DNA of 63,480 nucleotides, filler included, from Guillardia theta CCMP2712 (GCF_000315625.1; 5 parts of 5 records of this genome joined end to end with filler, not necessarily neighbours in it); one strand, 5' to 3'. Shown: positions 55,884 to 63,480, counted from the whole stretch's first letter. Numbers and translations: made by a program. Notes: a model not told the origin generated them from the letters alone.

Positions 55884-56677
55884 AAGGAAGTTGTGGGCAG
55901 GGGGGGAAAGCAGGGAGGGAGGAAGAGGGACGGGCAAAATTGGGATTGTTGGCGGCAAGGGAGATTAAGAGAACTTGGGTGGTTTGAAGTTGACGAGCAT
56001 GCTAGCATCTCGAAGATGACCAGCAAGTCGATACTTGAAGGATGATGTAACTTGTGGATCATCGAAGATGATGAAGAAACAAGATGAAGAACAAGGAAAA
56101 CACAACAATTCAAACTCATCTACGAAATCATGTTTTTATCTATTCTCTGACATGTAAAACCCTCTCAAACAATAAATCGGATATTCCTCCCCTACCCCCC
56201 CTTCTATGTACATAGTTTCTTTCTTCCATTCCCCCCGATTCCTGCCGCTCTATCTCCACCTCCCTTGCTGGCTTGTAAGCCCACGCCATCTCCCTCATGT
56301 TCTCCTCAACCATCTATCGGTCGCCCACATCCCCACCGCCGTCATCCCTGCAAGGAGCACTGACAGCAACGGCACCTTCCTCATGAGCAGCGACAGCCCC
56401 ACCCCTGCCATCATCCCTATCCCCTGCTCGAGCATTAGAACCTTCTTCCTGCTCCTCCTCCCTCCCCCCCCCCCNNNNNNNNNNNNNNNNNNNNNNNNNN
56501 NNNNNNNNNNNNNNNNNNTTAATTAATTAANNNNNNNNNNNNNNNNNNNNNNNNNNNNNNNNNNNNNNNNNNNNTATGTCTTGTTGCTGCCTTTTGTGCA
56601 TTTGGTGCTGATGGTCTGAGGCGGGTGGCTTTCTACTAGGGAGAGGACCAAGGGGATCAAGGGGGGAACCAACGACA

Positions 56678-57247
56678 TTGGCGACAAGAAGAAAGACTGG
56701 ACATACAGAGCTGCAGGATCTAAGGATAGATTGCAATCATTTCAAGATATCTGATCAAGAAATGACAACGTGGATGTCTTATGCGCAAAAAACGAAACTG
56801 AATCCTTTGATTGTGAAGTTCAACAAGATCAATCTTGAGAACTCTTGCTTGAGTGATGTCAAGGACATCATCTTTGATAGGTACATGGAGTTGTGCAAGA
56901 CAGAGATCAAGGAATTCAACCTTGACAACTTTATGTGCCAGATTTGCTGCTCTTGGACACCTTGTAAAGAGCGGAATATATCGGATGTGTGCAAGACCTG
57001 CAGAGATAATTATTTTGTATGGAGATGCTCTATGTGTGATGATGATGTGTTTGAGCACCTCGACGCAATAGTAACCGCAGAATATCTGTGCGATGGATGC
57101 TATATGGAGGTGCCATACTGCAAGAGATGTTACGAAGAGGAGCTCGAGTTCTCATGCTGGAAATGTGGAGACATATACAAGCTGTGTAATGGATATGATG
57201 AGGACTGTTGCTCATATGGTTGCACGTCTGGAGACGAATGGTGGTAG
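56678..57247 (+). CDS. Intronless, AT-richer Cys-rich (multiple CxxC) hypothetical protein
   Basis: 189-aa ORF with CQIC, CKTC, CSMC, CDGC, CKRC and CWKC. Confidence 0.55.
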   Translation: MATRRKTGHTELQDLRIDCNHFKISDQEMTTWMSYAQKTKLNPLIVKFNKINLENSCLSDVKDIIFDRYMELCKTEIKEFNLDNFMCQICCSWTPCKERNISDVCKTCRDNYFVWRCSMCDDDVFEHLDAIVTAEYLCDGCYMEVPYCKRCYEEELEFSCWKCGDIYKLCNGYDEDCCSYGCTSGDEWW

Positions 57248-59145
57248 ACAACAAGGATCCAGGGGGTTACATTTTACAAACTGTGCACCTTCAATCCAAG
57301 CATATTTTTTCATCAATGTTTGGATGTTCATTCTTACAAATCTCCAATACACTCTTCACAATCTAGCCTTCTTCTCTTGTGGCTACATTGTTCATCTTCA
57401 CAATCTAGCCTTCTCCGTTATCTACTCTCCTCTCCGGCAGCTTTTCCTCTGACCTGATCTTCTCATCTCTTGGATCTGCTCTCCTTCACTGGTTTCCCTC
57501 TCCTCTCCTCTCGTGNNNNNNNNNNNNNNNNNNNNNNNNNNNNNNNNNNNNNNNNNNNNNNNNNNNNNNNNNNNNNNNNNNNNNNNNNNNNNNNNNNNNN
57601 NNNNNNNNNNNNNNNNNNNNNNNNNNNNNNNNNNNNNNNNNNNNCCCCTTGTCATTTCACTCCACTACCTCCCCCCTGTCCATTCCTCTTCTCCGCTCTC
57701 TGCTCTCTGCTTCTCCCTGCCCTGCTCGTNNNNNNNNNNNNNNNNNNNNNNNNNNNNNNNNNNNNNNNNNNNNNNNNNNNNNNNNNNNNNNNNNNNNNNN
57801 NNNNNNNNNNNNNNNNNNNNNNNNNNNNNTCTTCTCCTCCTCTCTCCTCTCCTCTTCCATCTGTTCCCTTTGCTTTTCTGATCGCCTTTCTACTCTACTG
57901 GCTGAGGCTTGAAGAGAAGCAGCTCGACAGGTAAAACCAACGAGAGAGAAACGAGAGAAGAGAGAAAACGACAAGGGAAGGGAGAGAGAGAGGGTAAGAA
58001 AGGGGAAGATGAACAAGCCAGTAGACAACGAGAGATGTTTACAAGATGTTTAGGAGAGGGTGAGAAAGAGGGGAAGAGAAAAGAGCAGAATCACGACCAG
58101 CAGCCAAGATGCAGAAAGAGAAAGAGACAGAGAGACAGAGAGACAGTGAGAGACAGACAGACAGACAGACAGACAGAGACAGCGAGACAGAGAGATAGAG
58201 AGAGGATAAGACGTGAGGTATGTNNNNNNNNNNNNNNNNNNNNNNNNNNNNNNNNNNNNNNNNNNNNNNNNNNNNNNNNNNNNNNNNNNNNNNNNNNNNN
58301 NNNNNNNNNNNNNNNNNNNNNNNNNNNNNNNNNNNNNNNNNNNNNNNNNNNNNNNNNNNNNNNNNNNNNNNNNNNNNNNNNNNNNNNAGCTGTACTGCAA
58401 CAAACATCAAGAAAGTCATATCTAGAGAGAGACAATGAGAAGAAGAAAAAACTAGGAGGAGGAAGAAAAGGATCAAGAAAATTAAGGAGAGGACGAAAAG
58501 AAAGAAGCAAAACCAAGAACCANNNNNNNNNNNNNNNNNNNNNNNNNNNNNNNNNNNNNNNNNNNNNNNNNNNNNNNNNNNNNNNNNNNNNNNNNNNNNN
58601 NNNNNNNNNNNNNNNNNNNNNNNNNNNNNNNNNNNNNNNNNNNNNNNNNNNNNNNNNNNNNNNNNNNNNNNNNNNNNNNNNNNNNNNNNNNNNNNNNNNN
58701 NNNNNNNNNNNNNNNNNNNNNNNNNNNNNNNNNNNNNNNNNNNNNNNNNNNNNNNNNNNNNNNNNNNNNNNNNNNNNNNNNNNNNNNNNNNNNNNNNNNN
58801 NNNNNNNNNNCATCACTCTCAGACCACCTACCCCTCTCGTCCCTCTCCTTCATGTACCCTCTACCCCCCTCCCATCAAGAGAGGTCAATCTTTTCTTCAT
58901 TCGAGCAATACACCCTGACACTGAGTGCCCTCAGTGACCGGGCCTGGCCCCGAGGCCCCGGGGCCGCGGCCCGGTGCTTCAGCTACTCCCGTCCCGGGCC
59001 CGAGGAGGGACTCCGGTGAGTAGAGGATGAAAGCTGCGGGGCTGTACAAGACATGTGCTATCCGAGTCATACGGCAGTAGATGGCTCACTAGTGCAAGCA
59101 CAAGCGATGAGAGGCCTAGACCAGTCTCCTCGCATGTCTCCCTAG

Positions 59146-59950
59146 TCACGAGTAGATCCTGCACATGCTCGTCCCGCTCGAGCGACACATCGGGCATGAC
59201 CTAGACGTCGCTGCCTCCTTGCAGTCCTCGCACAGACACTTGTGACCACAGGGGATCAGCGCCCATTCAGCTCTTCGATCCATGCAGACGACGCATGGCT
59301 GCCCGCGCTCTCCGACGGCATCATCGTATCGCTGCTGAAGCTTCTTCCGCAGCTCGCTGAAGCTCGGCCGCTCCTTGATCTTCTCCCGCCAGCACTCTCG
59401 CATGATGGCATACACTGCTGGAGGGCATGCAGCAGGAGCCGCTAGTCGCTCCCCGTCCACAACCTTGGGTCCTACAAGCTCATCGTCGGTGATGGCCCAG
59501 TAAGGGACTTTGCCGTAAGTCCAGACCTCCCACAGCGTCACCCCGAACGCCCACACGTCGCTCTTCTCCGAGTAGCGATGTCTCAGCAAGCTCTCCGGCG
59601 CCATCCATCGCGCCCGTCCAGCCCTCGAGCCTGCCGAGCTCTCGCTCCCTACCCGACTCACTCCGTCACCGCGCGAGCCCATGATCCATCGCCCGTAGTC
59701 GGCTACCTTGACTCTCACCCCGAGGTGATCCTGCCCTTGCAGACTCCACACAAGCACGCTCCTCGCCGCCAGCTCCCGGTGTACAACATCGTGCAGCGAC
59801 AGCTGCTCCATCCCGTCGCAGATCTGCCTCGCCACCTCCAGCTGCACCAGCTCGCCCATCGTCTCCTCCTCCTCTGCGAAGCTGCGCAAGGTCCTCTCGA
59901 GAGAGCCCTGGCAAGCGTACTCAGTCACCAGGCAGTAGTCGCCAGAGCTT
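59146..59950 (-). CDS. Tyrosine-kinase-like C-lobe + C3HC4 RING (N-lobe absent; probably a disrupted gene end)
   Basis: LVTEY, HRELAARSV, KVADYG, RWMAPE, SDVWAFGVTLWE, RPSF; CVVC...PCGH...C..C...CPMC. Confidence 0.85.
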
Positions 59951-60646
59951 GGCTGCTGGTGTTGCTGCTGGCGCTTGCGCTTCTTCGTCTTGTACAGCCT
60001 GAGGGAAGGACTTCTTCTTGTCCTGCGTCGAGTCTTGCCCTTGTACAGCCTGAGGGAAGGACTAGCGCTACTGCTCCTTGCTGCTCGAGCTCACTCGCCT
60101 CGTGCCAGCTCTCGCTCCTCGCAAGCTTCTGCTCCTTGTTGTATCCATGAGGATCCGGAACCACGGATACTCGTCGGATACTCTGCCGGATATTCCCTAT
60201 ATAGGCGGATGCATCTCGTGCGGACGGCCTCCTGAATTTCCCCCACTTGCATGCACAGTGAGTGTGGTGGTTGTGCGTAGTTTACCTCCTAGTAAACTTA
60301 GAGACTTCTATTTCCTGCTTCTCTATCTTCTTCATCCTTACTTTACTCCTCGTCCTACCAGCAGTGAGGGGAGCCACCCGTACTTGCTAGTCTCTCTCAG
60401 GCACCAGGGGTCATCCTCCCGAGCACATCTAGTCGTTGTATGCATCAAGCGCTTTGAGAGTCGTTTGCCTGACTTGGAGTGCTGTCCCTTAGCTGGGGTA
60501 GGTGCAGTCTTGAGGTCAGCTCGCTTTTACTAGGGCTCTGATAGATATGAGAGCGATTTCTATGGCTGCAGCTTGTTGGCTCAGTCTTAGTCCATACCTT
60601 AACTTGTAAGATAATCCTTAACCTCTGACTTAATCGCCAAAGTCAA
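59951..60646. other. Non-coding insert/replacement between the ankyrin array and the kinase, possibly a mobile-element fragment
   Basis: Abrupt loss of coding frame on both sides; internal 23-bp direct repeat TTGTACAGCCTGAGGGAAGGACT (59990, 60041). Confidence 0.35.
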
Positions 60647-61840
60647 GCATGTTTTGCCGTCGTTGTCCTTCTCGCTCAGACCTCCTCCCCGCATGTCTCT
60701 GCAAGGTACCGCAGCACCTCCAGGTGCCCTCCCTCACTCGCATAGTGCGCGCATGTCCTGCCATACTCGTCCTTCTCCCTCAGCAGCTCCTCCTCGCATG
60801 TCTCCGCCAAGTACAACAGCATCTCCAGATGACTCGCCAAGTGCGCGCATGTCATGTCGAAATCGGTCTTCTCGCTGAGCAGCTCCTCCCCGCATGTCTC
60901 TGCAGCATACCGCACTACCTCTAAGTAACCTCCCTAGCTAGCAAAGTGCGCGCATGTCCCGCCGTCATTGGCCTTCTCCTGCCGTTGTTGACCGTCTCCC
61001 TCAGCACCTCCTCCCCGCATGTCTCTACAGCATACCGCACTACCTCCAAGTGCCCACCTGCACTCGCCAAGAGCGCGCATGTCTGGCCGTCTATGGTCTT
61101 CTGCCTCAGCAGCTCCTCCCCGCATGTCTCTGCAACATACCGCAGCACCTCCAAGTGCCCTCCCTGACTCGCCAAGTGCGCGCATGTGATGCCGTACTGG
61201 TCCTTCTCCCTCAGCACCTCCTCCCCGCATGCCTCTACAGCATACCGCACTACCTCCAAGTGCCCTCTATAACTCGCCACATACGCGCATGTGTAGCCTT
61301 CCTTGTCCTTCTCCCTCAGCACCTCCTCCCCGCATGTCTCCCCAACATACCGCAGCACCTCCAAGTGCCCTCCAGCACTTGCAAAGTGCGCGCATGTCCT
61401 GCCGTCTTCGTCCTTCTCCCTCAGCACCTCCTCCCCGCATGTCTCTGCAGCATACCGCACTACCTCTAAGTGCCCTCCATGACTCGCAAAGTGCGCGCAT
61501 GTCATGCAATGCATGGCCTTCTCCCTCAGCACCTCCTCCCCGCATGTCTCTGCAGCATACCGCAGCACCTCCATGTGCCCTCCCTCACTCGCCCAGTGCG
61601 CGCATGTCCTGCCGTCATTGGCCTTCTCCCTCAGCATCTCCTCCCCGCATGTCTCTGCAGCATACCGCACTACCTCCAAGTGCCCTCCATGGCTCGCCAT
61701 GTGCGCGCATGTGTAGCCTTCCTTGTCCTTCTCCCTCAGCACCTCCTCCCCGCATGTCTCTACAGCATACCGCACTACCTCCAAGTGCCCTCTATAACTC
61801 GCCAAGTGCGCGCATGTCCTGCCGGCATTGTCCTTCTCCA
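60647..61840 (-). repeat. 105-bp coding tandem repeat (about 12 ankyrin units)
   Basis: KxxxGxTCAHxASxxGHLEV(V/L)RYxxETCGEE(V/L)LRE with 105-bp period. Confidence 0.95.
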
Positions 61841-63480
61841 TCATCAAGGTCCTCAGAGTCTCTTTCCCGCATTCTTCCTCTACCGTCTTCAGCACCTCCA
61901 CATGCCCATACTCCGCCGCCCAGTGCACCATCGTCTCCTCTGCCCTGTCCTTCGCTCCTACCTCTGCTCCTGCGTGTATCAGCTCCCTCACGCTCCCCGC
62001 CCTCCCCAGCATCCCCGCTACATGCAGCCCTGTCCTCCCGTCCTTCATCCGCTCGTCCATGTCGTATCCGCCCGCCTTCAGCAGCCCGATCAGCTCCCCC
62101 TGTCCTCGTACCACCGCCGTCACTGTCGGCGGCTCCCCGTGCTTGTCCGACCTTGACATCGACAAGCCGTACATCCCGCACAGCCTCTTGCTCTGCTCTC
62201 GTCTGCCGTCATCGCCTGCTGGAGTCCGCGAGCTAATCTCGTACATCAGACCCGCCATCGTCTTCCAGTACACTGACTGCATCGGCTCGCCTGCAAGGGC
62301 TACACATTTAAGGTCTCCCTGGGTGTCTTCGATCCAGTGCCTGAGCTTGTTGATCGCCATGTCCTTGACTCGGTTCGACAGCTCGATCGCCTCCTTGTAT
62401 CTTGACTCGTCGTTGTACCAGCCCGACTCCCTCCCCCTGCTCGCCTCCACCAGCCCCCAGCACTCCCTCACGATCGACCTCACAAGACCCGGATGGTTCT
62501 GTCTAAAAGAGTCGAATGGTGCTGTCCTGAGCCGCTCCTGGATCCTCCCCTCCCACCCCCTCACGTCTCGCTCTACCTCCCTCGCCAGGTTCTCCATCAG
62601 CCCTACGTACAGCTGCTTCCTCTTCCCCACAAAGTCCTCGATCGTCAAGCTCATCGTGTTCGCGTTGATCTTCAGCTCCAGCACCTTCACCCGCCTCCCC
62701 TCTACCTCCCTGTACCGCGGCGTCTTCACCACCTCCAGGTACGACAGCGGCGGATACAACATCTCCCCCTCCCCCGGATACTGAGATACAAACGTCAAGC
62801 TCGCCCCCCGGTCGATCGCCCCGCAGCTGATCTCGAACACCATCGACTCTCCCTCCTCCCCGGCGTACTGCATCGCCGTCCTGACGTCCGTCGTCGTGCT
62901 CAGCAGCCCGTACTCGACTCCTCCGGACACCCCGAGCTCGTCCACGTTGAGGAAGCTCTCCGGCAGCCTCATCCCCTTCAGCCCCCTCCACACCCGCAGC
63001 CCCTCCGGCAGAGGCGTGTGACGAGACAGCTTGACGATGCCGCTGACGATGCAGTGGATGGTCGTCGTGTACTTGTTGGGGACCTTGTTCGAGTCTCGGA
63101 GGAGCTCGTTGGGAGCTCGAAGAACAGAGTTGTACTTGAAGTACATCGGCCCTGTCATAGCAACCCTCTTGTCAGCCATCTCACGCTCCCCTTGCTCCTC
63201 TCTCCTCCCCCATGCTCCTTCTCCCTCTCTCGCTATCTCTCTCTCTTACCTGTGTAGAGCTGCAGCGCGATCAGCTCTGCCTCCTGTAGCCCCGCCTTGA
63301 TCGCCGTGTCCAGCGCCTTCAGCTCCTCCATCCCTCGGATCACCCGCGTCCCGTCCGACAGCCTCCGCCTCCTCTCCGGGTCTGTCACGTTGAGCCACTC
63401 CTCCTTGGCTGTCGTCGTGATGTTGTAGTTGCTCGTTGTGAACGCTTCCTCCGCGTCCTTGCCCTTGATCGTGACGTGCG
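60647..63480 (-). CDS. ADP-ribosyltransferase (R-S-E clade) + ankyrin-repeat protein; 5' end outside the window, 3' repeats disrupted
   Basis: Upstream exon FTTSNY...LQLYT/GPMY (intron about 63153-63250); VWRG, LSTTT, QYPGEGEMLYPP; 35-aa ankyrin repeats; frameshift near 60978 and TAG near 60935. Confidence 0.85.

Follow-up and report, generated by a model that had tools for sequence, protein, structure and literature searches.

Organization of the locus

The window analysed here is a stretch of 63,480 nt from Guillardia theta CCMP2712. Its last piece (56575-63480) is eukaryotic, has a right half of about 60% G+C, and carries on the minus strand a gene in which an ADP-ribosyltransferase (ART) domain, an all-helical linker and a short ankyrin segment precede a tandem array of 105-bp ankyrin-variant units (Table 1). 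The left of the piece contains AG/TC-rich simple repeats and runs of N; the scaffold is short, rearranged and repeat-rich, and the neighbouring gene is a truncated kinase-RING fragment accompanied by repetitive intergenic DNA. The principal open reading frame comprises 752 codons (63179-60921, minus strand), of which the first nine are intron, the coding part of this frame beginning at 63151. Plus-strand ORFs over the array (e.g. 61229-62236) were rejected as mirror-frame by-products of the repeat.

Table 1. Features of the ART-ankyrin gene and of its unit array (positions in the window)
Feature	Position	Strand	Basis or state
Upstream exon segment (KGKDAEEAF...LQLYT), N-terminal part of ART domain	63250..63467	-	Translation; 95% identity to paralogue L002
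GT..AG intron, 98 nt	63152..63249	-	Skipped exactly by contigs of RNA-like runs X2 and X9
ADP-ribosyltransferase core	62655..63151	-	Invariant residues, Pfam, profile, homologue fold
ART motif, Arg	62987-62985	-	Family alignments
ART motif, Ser-Thr-Thr	62900-62892	-	Family alignments
ART motif, Glu-x-Glu	62771-62763	-	Family alignments
All-helical linker, enzyme to ankyrin domain	62145..62654	-	AlphaFold2 helices 180-336, pLDDT about 80-93
ANK1-3, two ankyrin repeats of the canonical 33-residue length plus a transitional unit	61833..62144	-	Pfam Ank/Ank_2, pLDDT above 90
U1-U8, eight intact 105-bp (35-codon) ankyrin-variant units	60993..61832	-	Register alignment, repeat finding, structure model
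20-bp unit remnant, codons 1-5 (VNNGR) fused to final 5 nt	60973..60992	-	Tandem 20-bp match
U9	60868-60972	-	Out of frame
Stop TAG closing the open frame after the out-of-frame tail VNNGRRRPMTAGHARTLLAREVT	60921..60923	-	ORF translation
U10	60772-60867	-	Out of frame
U11	60668-60771	-	Out of frame
Former C-terminal capping repeat (DNDGKTCLTLAIKSEVKDYLTS) and original stop	60599..60667	-	Out of frame now

Gene structure and the ADP-ribosyltransferase domain

Similarity to the paralogue, as to every run contig, begins at 63467, a position at which contigs have loose ends in all four of the public runs, and no match was obtained for the terminal 13 nt of the piece (63468-63480). The idea of an intron acceptor close to 63463 was rejected, since L002 shows continuous coding sequence there. 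The 98-nt intron falls at the same codon (LYT/G) as in the G. theta homologue GUITHDRAFT_119904 (P0001), and its removal is observed directly in a near-identical transcript: spliced contigs, 98.4% identical to the window, join the 63151 side to the upstream exon. Differing from the window at about 1.5% of sites, these contigs may come from a sister copy or from another strain.

The catalytic signature (R65, S94-T95-T96 and E137-G-E139) is invariant across the 13-15 relatives in two family alignments. The ART fragment of the window, taken without its first exon, matches PF03496 (E 9e-4) and PF01129 (E 9e-3) at 19.0 and 15.9 bits against Pfam cut-offs of 23.4 and 22.3, values that apply to a domain lacking that exon; the full domain of P0001 scores 35.1 and 29.9 bits, above both cut-offs (PF01129 / PF03496). 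A profile of the family matches HopU1 (1e-8), SpvB, Tre1 and Vis. Foldseek searches with the P0001 ART model (pLDDT 82) returned Plx2a, VIP2, C3, HopU1 and Tre1 (E 3e-9), so that the fold is seen on the homologue, the N-truncated domain of the window itself having modelled poorly. By motif and profile, the partner enzyme is an arginine-type (R-S-ExE) mono-ADP-ribosyltransferase of predicted activity. The linker that follows it has no Pfam family on the equivalent stretch of P0001 (residues 480-700) beyond the first ankyrin repeats.

The ankyrin solenoid

Tandem Repeats Finder reports a 105-bp period with 8.2 copies and 82% matches at 60980-61843, and a degenerate continuation of the same repeat over 60647-60979. 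Brought into register on the minus strand, U1-U8 are among the units described in the earlier note as near-identical in framework, at the DNA level included. Their consensus reads D-x-x-G-x-TCAH-x-AS-x-x-GHLEV-[VL]-RY-x-x-ETCGEE-x-LREK, and their amino-acid identity averages 74% with a maximum of 83%. Two subtypes, with VV or VL at codons 19-20, alternate from U2 to U8, which suggests that the array grew in two-unit steps. The unit is 35 residues (105 bp) rather than the canonical ankyrin 33, and this variant is common to the whole cryptophyte family.

The Pfam models Ank_2 (148.8 bits, cut-off 27.3) and Ank_4 (141.1 bits) both match the ORF. An AlphaFold2 model of the window protein, built with 12 relatives, has pLDDT above 90 across the array and predicts in each unit two helices, spanning positions 7-14 and 17-27, and a short additional turn (30-33). 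Using Foldseek, the array model superposes on Espin1-AR (TM 0.92, rmsd 2.0) and also on AnkB, AnkR and many DARPins. With Pfam models above their curated cut-offs and a predicted solenoid of this form, the array is placed in the ankyrin repeat superfamily. The variable positions map to the beta-turn (1, 2, 3 and 5) and the inner helix (10, 13 and 14), with little variation in the outer helix. Located by homology and secondary structure, not by coordinates, the hypervariable residues would line the concave binding face, on which beta-hairpin and inner-helix variation has been described for fungal NLR arrays (PMC4986451).

Distribution of variation among the units

One amino acid is used across all eight intact units at 18 of the 35 codons, and at codons 6, 7, 8, 18, 25, 27, 29 and 30 a single codon occurs in 11 of 11 units. 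DNA identity among U1-U8 is 89-98% in the framework and 38-86% in the variable codons. The hypervariable codons, a set chosen partly after inspection of the data, are 1, 2, 3, 5, 10 and 13 and, less so, 14: six to seven residues are found at positions 2, 3, 5, 10 and 13, three at position 1 and two at position 14. Every beta-turn string listed in the earlier note was recovered (in U1-U8, U10 and U11), as was every helix-1 string (in U1-U8 and U11), and the sub-blocks said to recur in new combinations do so, with DKEGY joined to M-HG in U2 and to V-YR in U6, and DNAGR joined to YR in U1.

Of the eight positions that vary most in a set of 15,497 natural repeats, six (2, 3, 5, 13, 14 and 33) are those randomised in DARPins (PMC1261162). 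In the array these six positions, the last being 35 here, account for 49% of the entropy in amino acids (permutation tests, P = 0.00024 in U1-U8 and P = 0.0005 in U1-U11), in agreement with the claim of a constant scaffold with hypervariable contact positions. Because any ankyrin array varies more at DARPin positions, five ordinary arrays of the same family were compared; the contrast in variability between these positions and the rest is 4.6-fold in the array and 1.4-2.2-fold in the ordinary arrays. The variable positions are as diverse as in the old arrays, and the framework is far less so.

Substitution rates among U1-U8 (Nei-Gojobori) also differ along the unit: dN is 0.75 in the variable codons, and the framework has a dS of 0.094 and a dN of 0.063, with 8% of four-fold sites different. 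For DARPin codons defined a priori, dN is 0.66, compared with a dS of 0.093 in the remaining 29; the DARPin codons' own dS is also high (0.40), from very few sites. Since dN in the variable codons exceeds the synonymous divergence of these young units roughly eightfold, relaxed constraint alone is insufficient, and neutral drift accounts poorly for the contrast as read from these sequences. The gene has a strong bias in codon usage (GC3 = 0.79).

Family copies and relatives

The gene is multi-copy in G. theta CCMP2712. Besides that of the window, family loci are those on JH993400.1 and JH993026.1 and GUITHDRAFT_119904. Two partial gene models, P0321 and P0322 (loci L002 and L003), were found with a 175-residue query; protein searches with the whole ORF and with the array region had missed these close paralogues because their gene models are short fragments. 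L002 (GUITHDRAFT_83504, P0321) lies on an 8-kb scaffold. Between 63467 and 61629 its DNA, with the intron, is 94% identical to that of the window; the N-terminal region is present in it, and its array is cut short by the end of the scaffold. L003 is a degenerate copy without the enzyme core, interrupted by stops and frameshifts, which has its cap and 3' flank in common with the window. The cap at 60599-60667 is homologous to those of L003 and P0001. The latter (GUITHDRAFT_119904, locus L001) shows 74% DNA identity to the window (dS 0.56) and possesses only four units with 63-77% DNA identity; this old four-unit array and the dS of 0.56 indicate that the expansion and homogeneity of the window array are recent.

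Relatives in Guillardia theta, Hanusia phi and Hemiselmis share the architecture and the 35-residue unit, in some cases with EF-hands, while those in the haptophyte Emiliania huxleyi combine the same enzyme with leucine-rich repeats instead of ankyrin. Metagenome scans with the DNA pattern of the unit framework and with the enzyme-plus-linker protein gave no match. With U1-U8 as the query, an exhaustive search of representatives gave nothing but giant generic ankyrin proteins, at no more than 42% identity, a result uninformative on close copies. No paper on this family turned up in the literature collection that was searched.

Comparison of the window with L002

Over 440 codons the window and L002 are separated by 57 substitutions, with no indel and no stop. 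The whole pre-array region has a dN/dS of 0.83, which is unequally distributed: 0.26 in the enzyme core (dS 0.042, dN 0.011), 0.72 in the helical linker (dS 0.076, dN 0.054) and 2.4 in ANK1-3 (dS 0.030, dN 0.074). The difference between ANK1-3 and the core has a Fisher P of 0.02; the ANK1-3 value above 1 is on its own not significant against neutrality (P 0.14). The changes in ANK1-3 cluster in beta-turn positions (e.g. GGY to TEC and RAEE to DEWK).

At U1-U2, 12 of 14 hypervariable residues differ from L002 (dN 0.92). The framework dS of these two units is 0.15, and that of the flanks 0.05. Since the framework exceeds the flanks, the first two units are perhaps not positional orthologues, which would itself imply unit turnover; part of the U1-U2 contrast may thus reflect replacement of units rather than point substitution. 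As judged from these rates, the enzyme core is under purifying selection while the putative ankyrin contact residues turn over.

Possible shuffling of units

U6 has the form of a mosaic, its codons 1-8 being those of U2 and its codons 11-35 those of U1, with all 11 informative sites in two blocks. The uncorrected P value for this mosaic is 0.004, and significance is lost on correction for 429 triples. The four-gamete test is failed by 17 of 36 site pairs; PHI-like permutation testing gave no significant signal (p 0.6 and 0.11). Mantel comparisons show no correlation among the distances of the framework, the helix-1 block and the beta-turn block (r -0.07 to -0.03). Comparison across loci gives framework identities to the window units of 94-98% for the L003 unit and 86-93% for the L002 units, with flank identities in the opposite order (92.1% for L003 and 94.6% for L002).

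For the view that the array is recombination-diversified, advanced in the earlier note, the evidence is suggestive only: the mosaic U6, the uncoupled blocks and the units that do not follow their flanks favour it, while the PHI-like test and the corrected mosaic test are non-significant. From these comparisons, unit exchange within and between family members is likely but unproven. In one RNA-like run a contig joins the pre-array in register to U11, skipping 1061 nt that correspond exactly to U1-U10; it may stem from an allele or from a paralogue, or have arisen as an artefact of reverse transcription. The summed depth of public contigs over the array is 5-30 times that of the flanks, a value that does not give copy number, as units and loci share words.

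Damage at the 3' end

The array is broken, which the earlier note does not mention: a frameshift and a stop remove its last third from the frame. The 20-bp remnant results from an 85-bp internal deletion in a unit, which shifts the frame after U8, and the ORF ends 24 codons past this deletion without a C-cap. The units beyond are more diverged in framework (77-94%) and carry lesions of their own: U9 has a TAG at its codon 13 (60936-60934), U10 a 9-bp deletion between 60829 and 60828 that removes GGH, and U11 a 1-bp deletion between 60680 and 60679. A 132-nt contig of public run X1 matches 60892-61023 without difference, so that the deletion junction and the stop are present in reads and not in the assembly alone, and a contig of the RNA-like run X2 matches 60728-60907, in the U10-U11 region, exactly. 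A frame-restoring intron across the lesions was rejected, as no in-frame GT..AG pair was seen by eye and the RNA-like contig retains 60728-60907 with no joint there. All later lesions lie downstream of the first frameshift (chance P 0.02-0.003), and the 2.2 kb upstream of it are still open; together these favour a truncated but constrained gene over a fully dead one.

Interpretation

We regard it as reasonably probable that the array is a diversifying target-recognition solenoid for an ADP-ribosyltransferase, in a young multi-copy family of cryptophyte nuclear genes. The family protein consists of an N-terminal region, the R-S-ExE mono-ADP-ribosyltransferase, the helical linker and the ankyrin solenoid, the greater part of which is made up of a lineage-specific 35-residue unit. 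In the window copy a recent tandem multiplication, which probably went by two units at a time, has given at least 12 of them; the framework has stayed near-identical, synonymous sites included, while beta-turn and inner-helix residues of the presumed concave face were replaced repeatedly. Most likely, the solenoid would serve to recognise the target and so to deliver a protein substrate or partner to the enzyme, and its contact residues may be under diversifying selection, as opposed to a mutational process, aided by duplication and loss of units and probably by their exchange within or between family members. The present copy has lost 85 bp in one unit, so that its frame ends after U8; decay is under way in U9-U11 and in the cap, with 2.2 kb upstream remaining open. 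The finding is limited by the broken 3' end and the short scaffold.

The main rival is that the locus is a dead, decaying duplicate, its pattern produced by recent tandem duplication and relaxed surface constraint with no current function or selection. The frameshift, the early stop and the two additional deletions among the 3' units are of the kind expected from such a locus, as are the dN/dS of 0.83 over the whole pre-array region, the state of the sister locus L003, which is clearly a pseudogene, and the truncated kinase-RING neighbour with its repetitive surroundings. Yet an eightfold excess of dN at seven codons over the synonymous divergence of the units cannot come from neutral drift; the ART core has kept a dN/dS of 0.26 relative to L002, with no indel or stop among the 57 substitutions in 440 codons, and the confinement of later lesions to the 3' side of the first frameshift (P 0.02-0.003) fits an ORF that is truncated but maintained. 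We consider this explanation unlikely.

It is very improbable that the array is partly an artefact in which reads of near-identical family members were merged by the assembler, giving rise to apparent mosaics and perhaps to the deletion. Such merging would suit a short scaffold with runs of N whose last 13 nt have no match, public-run contigs that differ at about 1-1.5% of sites and exist in many variants, and a paralogue scaffold (L002) that breaks off inside its array; but exact public-run contigs span both the junction with its stop (60892-61023) and the U10-U11 region (60728-60907), the distinct combination of variable codons in each unit would anchor an assembly, and the hypervariable pattern recurs in the separately assembled units of L002 and L003. 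As little credence is given to the proposal that the near-identity of the frameworks arises from constraint at the DNA or RNA level, or from homology-limited gene conversion, with the variable codons as islands that conversion did not cross and without selection on binding. Frameworks at different loci are indeed 86-98% identical without tracking flank similarity, and the codon bias (GC3 0.79) is of the sort that this proposal would predict. Conversion tracts, however, would be expected to carry variable islands of 3-15 nt along with them unless this was selected against, the islands coincide with known binding positions (P 2e-4), and the same positions also diverge in ANK1-3, which is not repeated.

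Comparison with known systems

The closest known kind is that of the fungal NLR-type ankyrin arrays (PMC4986451). As in these, the frameworks of the units are near-identical, variation and apparent positive selection are confined to concave positions of the beta-hairpin and inner helix, the family is multi-copy, and there are hints of units that do not follow their flanks. Unlike them, the Guillardia array has an ADP-ribosyltransferase and not a NOD as its partner, resides in a cryptophyte and not a fungus, and is built from a 35- and not a 33-residue unit. The fungal arrays were defined by repeats more than 85% identical to one another over 100 residues or more (PMC4986451), and the mean amino-acid identity of the Guillardia units (74%) lies below this value. 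The fungal type is further marked by polymorphism in repeat number and by exchange of units within and between paralogues, to which the mosaic U6, the uncorrelated blocks, the units that depart from their flanks and the 1061-nt skip are leads here. Neither the ORF nor the full-length P0001 nor any other relative yielded a NOD domain (NACHT/NB-ARC). The kinship with fungal NLR-type receptors suggested in the earlier note is on both grounds not borne out.

With DARPins the array shares a fixed, consensus-like framework and variation at positions 2, 3, 5, 13 and 14, and its model superposes on DARPin crystal structures. It differs in being natural, in varying at positions 1 and 10 while the equivalent of position 33 is constant, in a loop two residues longer that forms an extra helical turn in each unit, and in having its C-cap out of frame. 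Its nearest likenesses in architecture, intron position and 35-residue unit are P0001, L002 and the relatives in Hanusia and Hemiselmis, although P0001 has four old units and the window at least 12 young ones.

The enzyme resembles the R-S-E mono-ARTs (HopU1, C3, VIP2, SpvB, Tre1 and Vis; PF01129 and PF03496) in its Arg, Ser-Thr-Thr and Glu-x-Glu motifs and in profile and fold matches. In contrast to those toxins and ecto-enzymes, it forms part of a eukaryotic, intracellular-looking multidomain protein with a recognition solenoid of its own, and its activity and residue specificity are putative. By analogy, the arrangement would resemble in principle that of tankyrase, where substrates are brought to an ADP-ribosylating domain by an ankyrin domain of the same polypeptide. 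Tankyrase, however, belongs to the H-Y-E PARP clade and not to the R-S-E type, and its conserved ankyrin clusters bind a fixed peptide motif, whereas the Guillardia array is hypervariable. The array is a member of neither the DARPin nor the tankyrase class, though it may work like both.

Significance

A constant scaffold with hypervariable binding residues is a hallmark of diversifying recognition systems. In this cryptophyte lineage the array signature is coupled to a conserved ADP-ribosyltransferase. Ankyrin versions have so far been documented in fungal NLR-type proteins, and the cryptophyte case would extend them to another eukaryotic supergroup and to another output domain. More speculatively, and with rather long odds against it, the genes could constitute an NLR-independent family in cryptophytes, and perhaps in haptophytes with leucine-rich repeats, in which the hypervariable solenoid senses non-self or a fast-evolving partner and the conserved arginine ADP-ribosyltransferase executes the response. 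Were this true, candidates for such a partner would include viruses, effectors from bacteria, and factors of mating or allorecognition, and the family's diversification by duplication and exchange of units and by positive selection would be a convergent counterpart of repeat evolution in fungal NLRs and a natural analogue of DARPin libraries. With a handful of loci in a culturable and sequenced alga, the family offers a testable system for the targets of such arrays and for the part that ADP-ribosylation may play in recognition-triggered responses of protists.

Copies and possible contraction of the array

A degenerate copy of the ADP-ribosyltransferase and ankyrin-array gene is present at the Guillardia theta paralogue locus L003. 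Its enzyme core has been deleted and it carries stop codons and frameshifts; it retains a single intact unit, together with a cap and 3' flank that match those of the window gene, and it adjoins small fragments of U-box and protein-kinase genes. One contig from X2, an RNA-like public sequencing run, contains a joint (60766/61828) at which the pre-array sequence is fused in register to unit 11, omitting 1061 nt which correspond exactly to units 1-10. This joint could possibly represent a contracted allele, a paralogue with a short array, or a template-switching artefact.

Features of the gene neighbourhood and of the L003 locus
Feature	Location	Strand
Degenerate gene copy, Guillardia theta	L003:7700-8700 and L003:4442-5473	
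Tyrosine-kinase-like kinase C-lobe, then C3HC4 RING finger	window 59146-59954	(-)
Cysteine-rich ORF, 189 codons, many CxxC pairs	window 56678-57247	(+)

Genomic surroundings

In the kinase-RING fragment beside the array gene, the catalytic HRD motif reads HRE. Contigs from all four public runs, including DNA-like data, agree with the window until approximately 59954, beyond which they run on into sequence that is not in the piece (window 56575-63480). Since these contigs depart from the window at this point, and no kinase N-lobe was found anywhere in the piece, the fragment is a truncated copy or marks a rearrangement breakpoint. The adjacent intergenic sequence at 60000-60430 behaves like a dispersed repeat: contig depth is several-fold higher than in its flanks, and loose ends and joints are numerous. 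It includes two copies of a 27-nt direct repeat (at about 60010-60066) beginning GTCCTTCCCTCAGGCTGTACAAG.

The 84 nt which open the piece (56575-56658) are 93% identical to L003:1578-1662 and form a further repeat common to both. The cysteine-rich ORF, for which there was no Pfam match, lies in sequence of 42% G+C. From 57500 to 58850 several runs of N alternate with AG/TC-rich and AGAC microsatellites, and the G+C content is well below that of both neighbours (42% on the left, 60% on the right), which suggests scaffold gaps separating unlike sequences. At the right end, the final 13 nt (63468-63480) are without a match in the run contigs or in the 94%-identical paralogue, in which the equivalent position is continuous coding sequence; they may be either junk at the edge of the scaffold or the result of a 5' truncation of the window gene copy.

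Module combinations in other algae

Among the relatives of the window protein (P0008, P0013, P0017 and P0019), the Hemiselmis-type proteins possess a pair of EF-hands N-terminal to the enzyme, and in those of Emiliania huxleyi leucine-rich repeats replace the ankyrin repeats. The ADP-ribosyltransferase is thus joined to differing regulatory or recognition modules from one of these algae to another.
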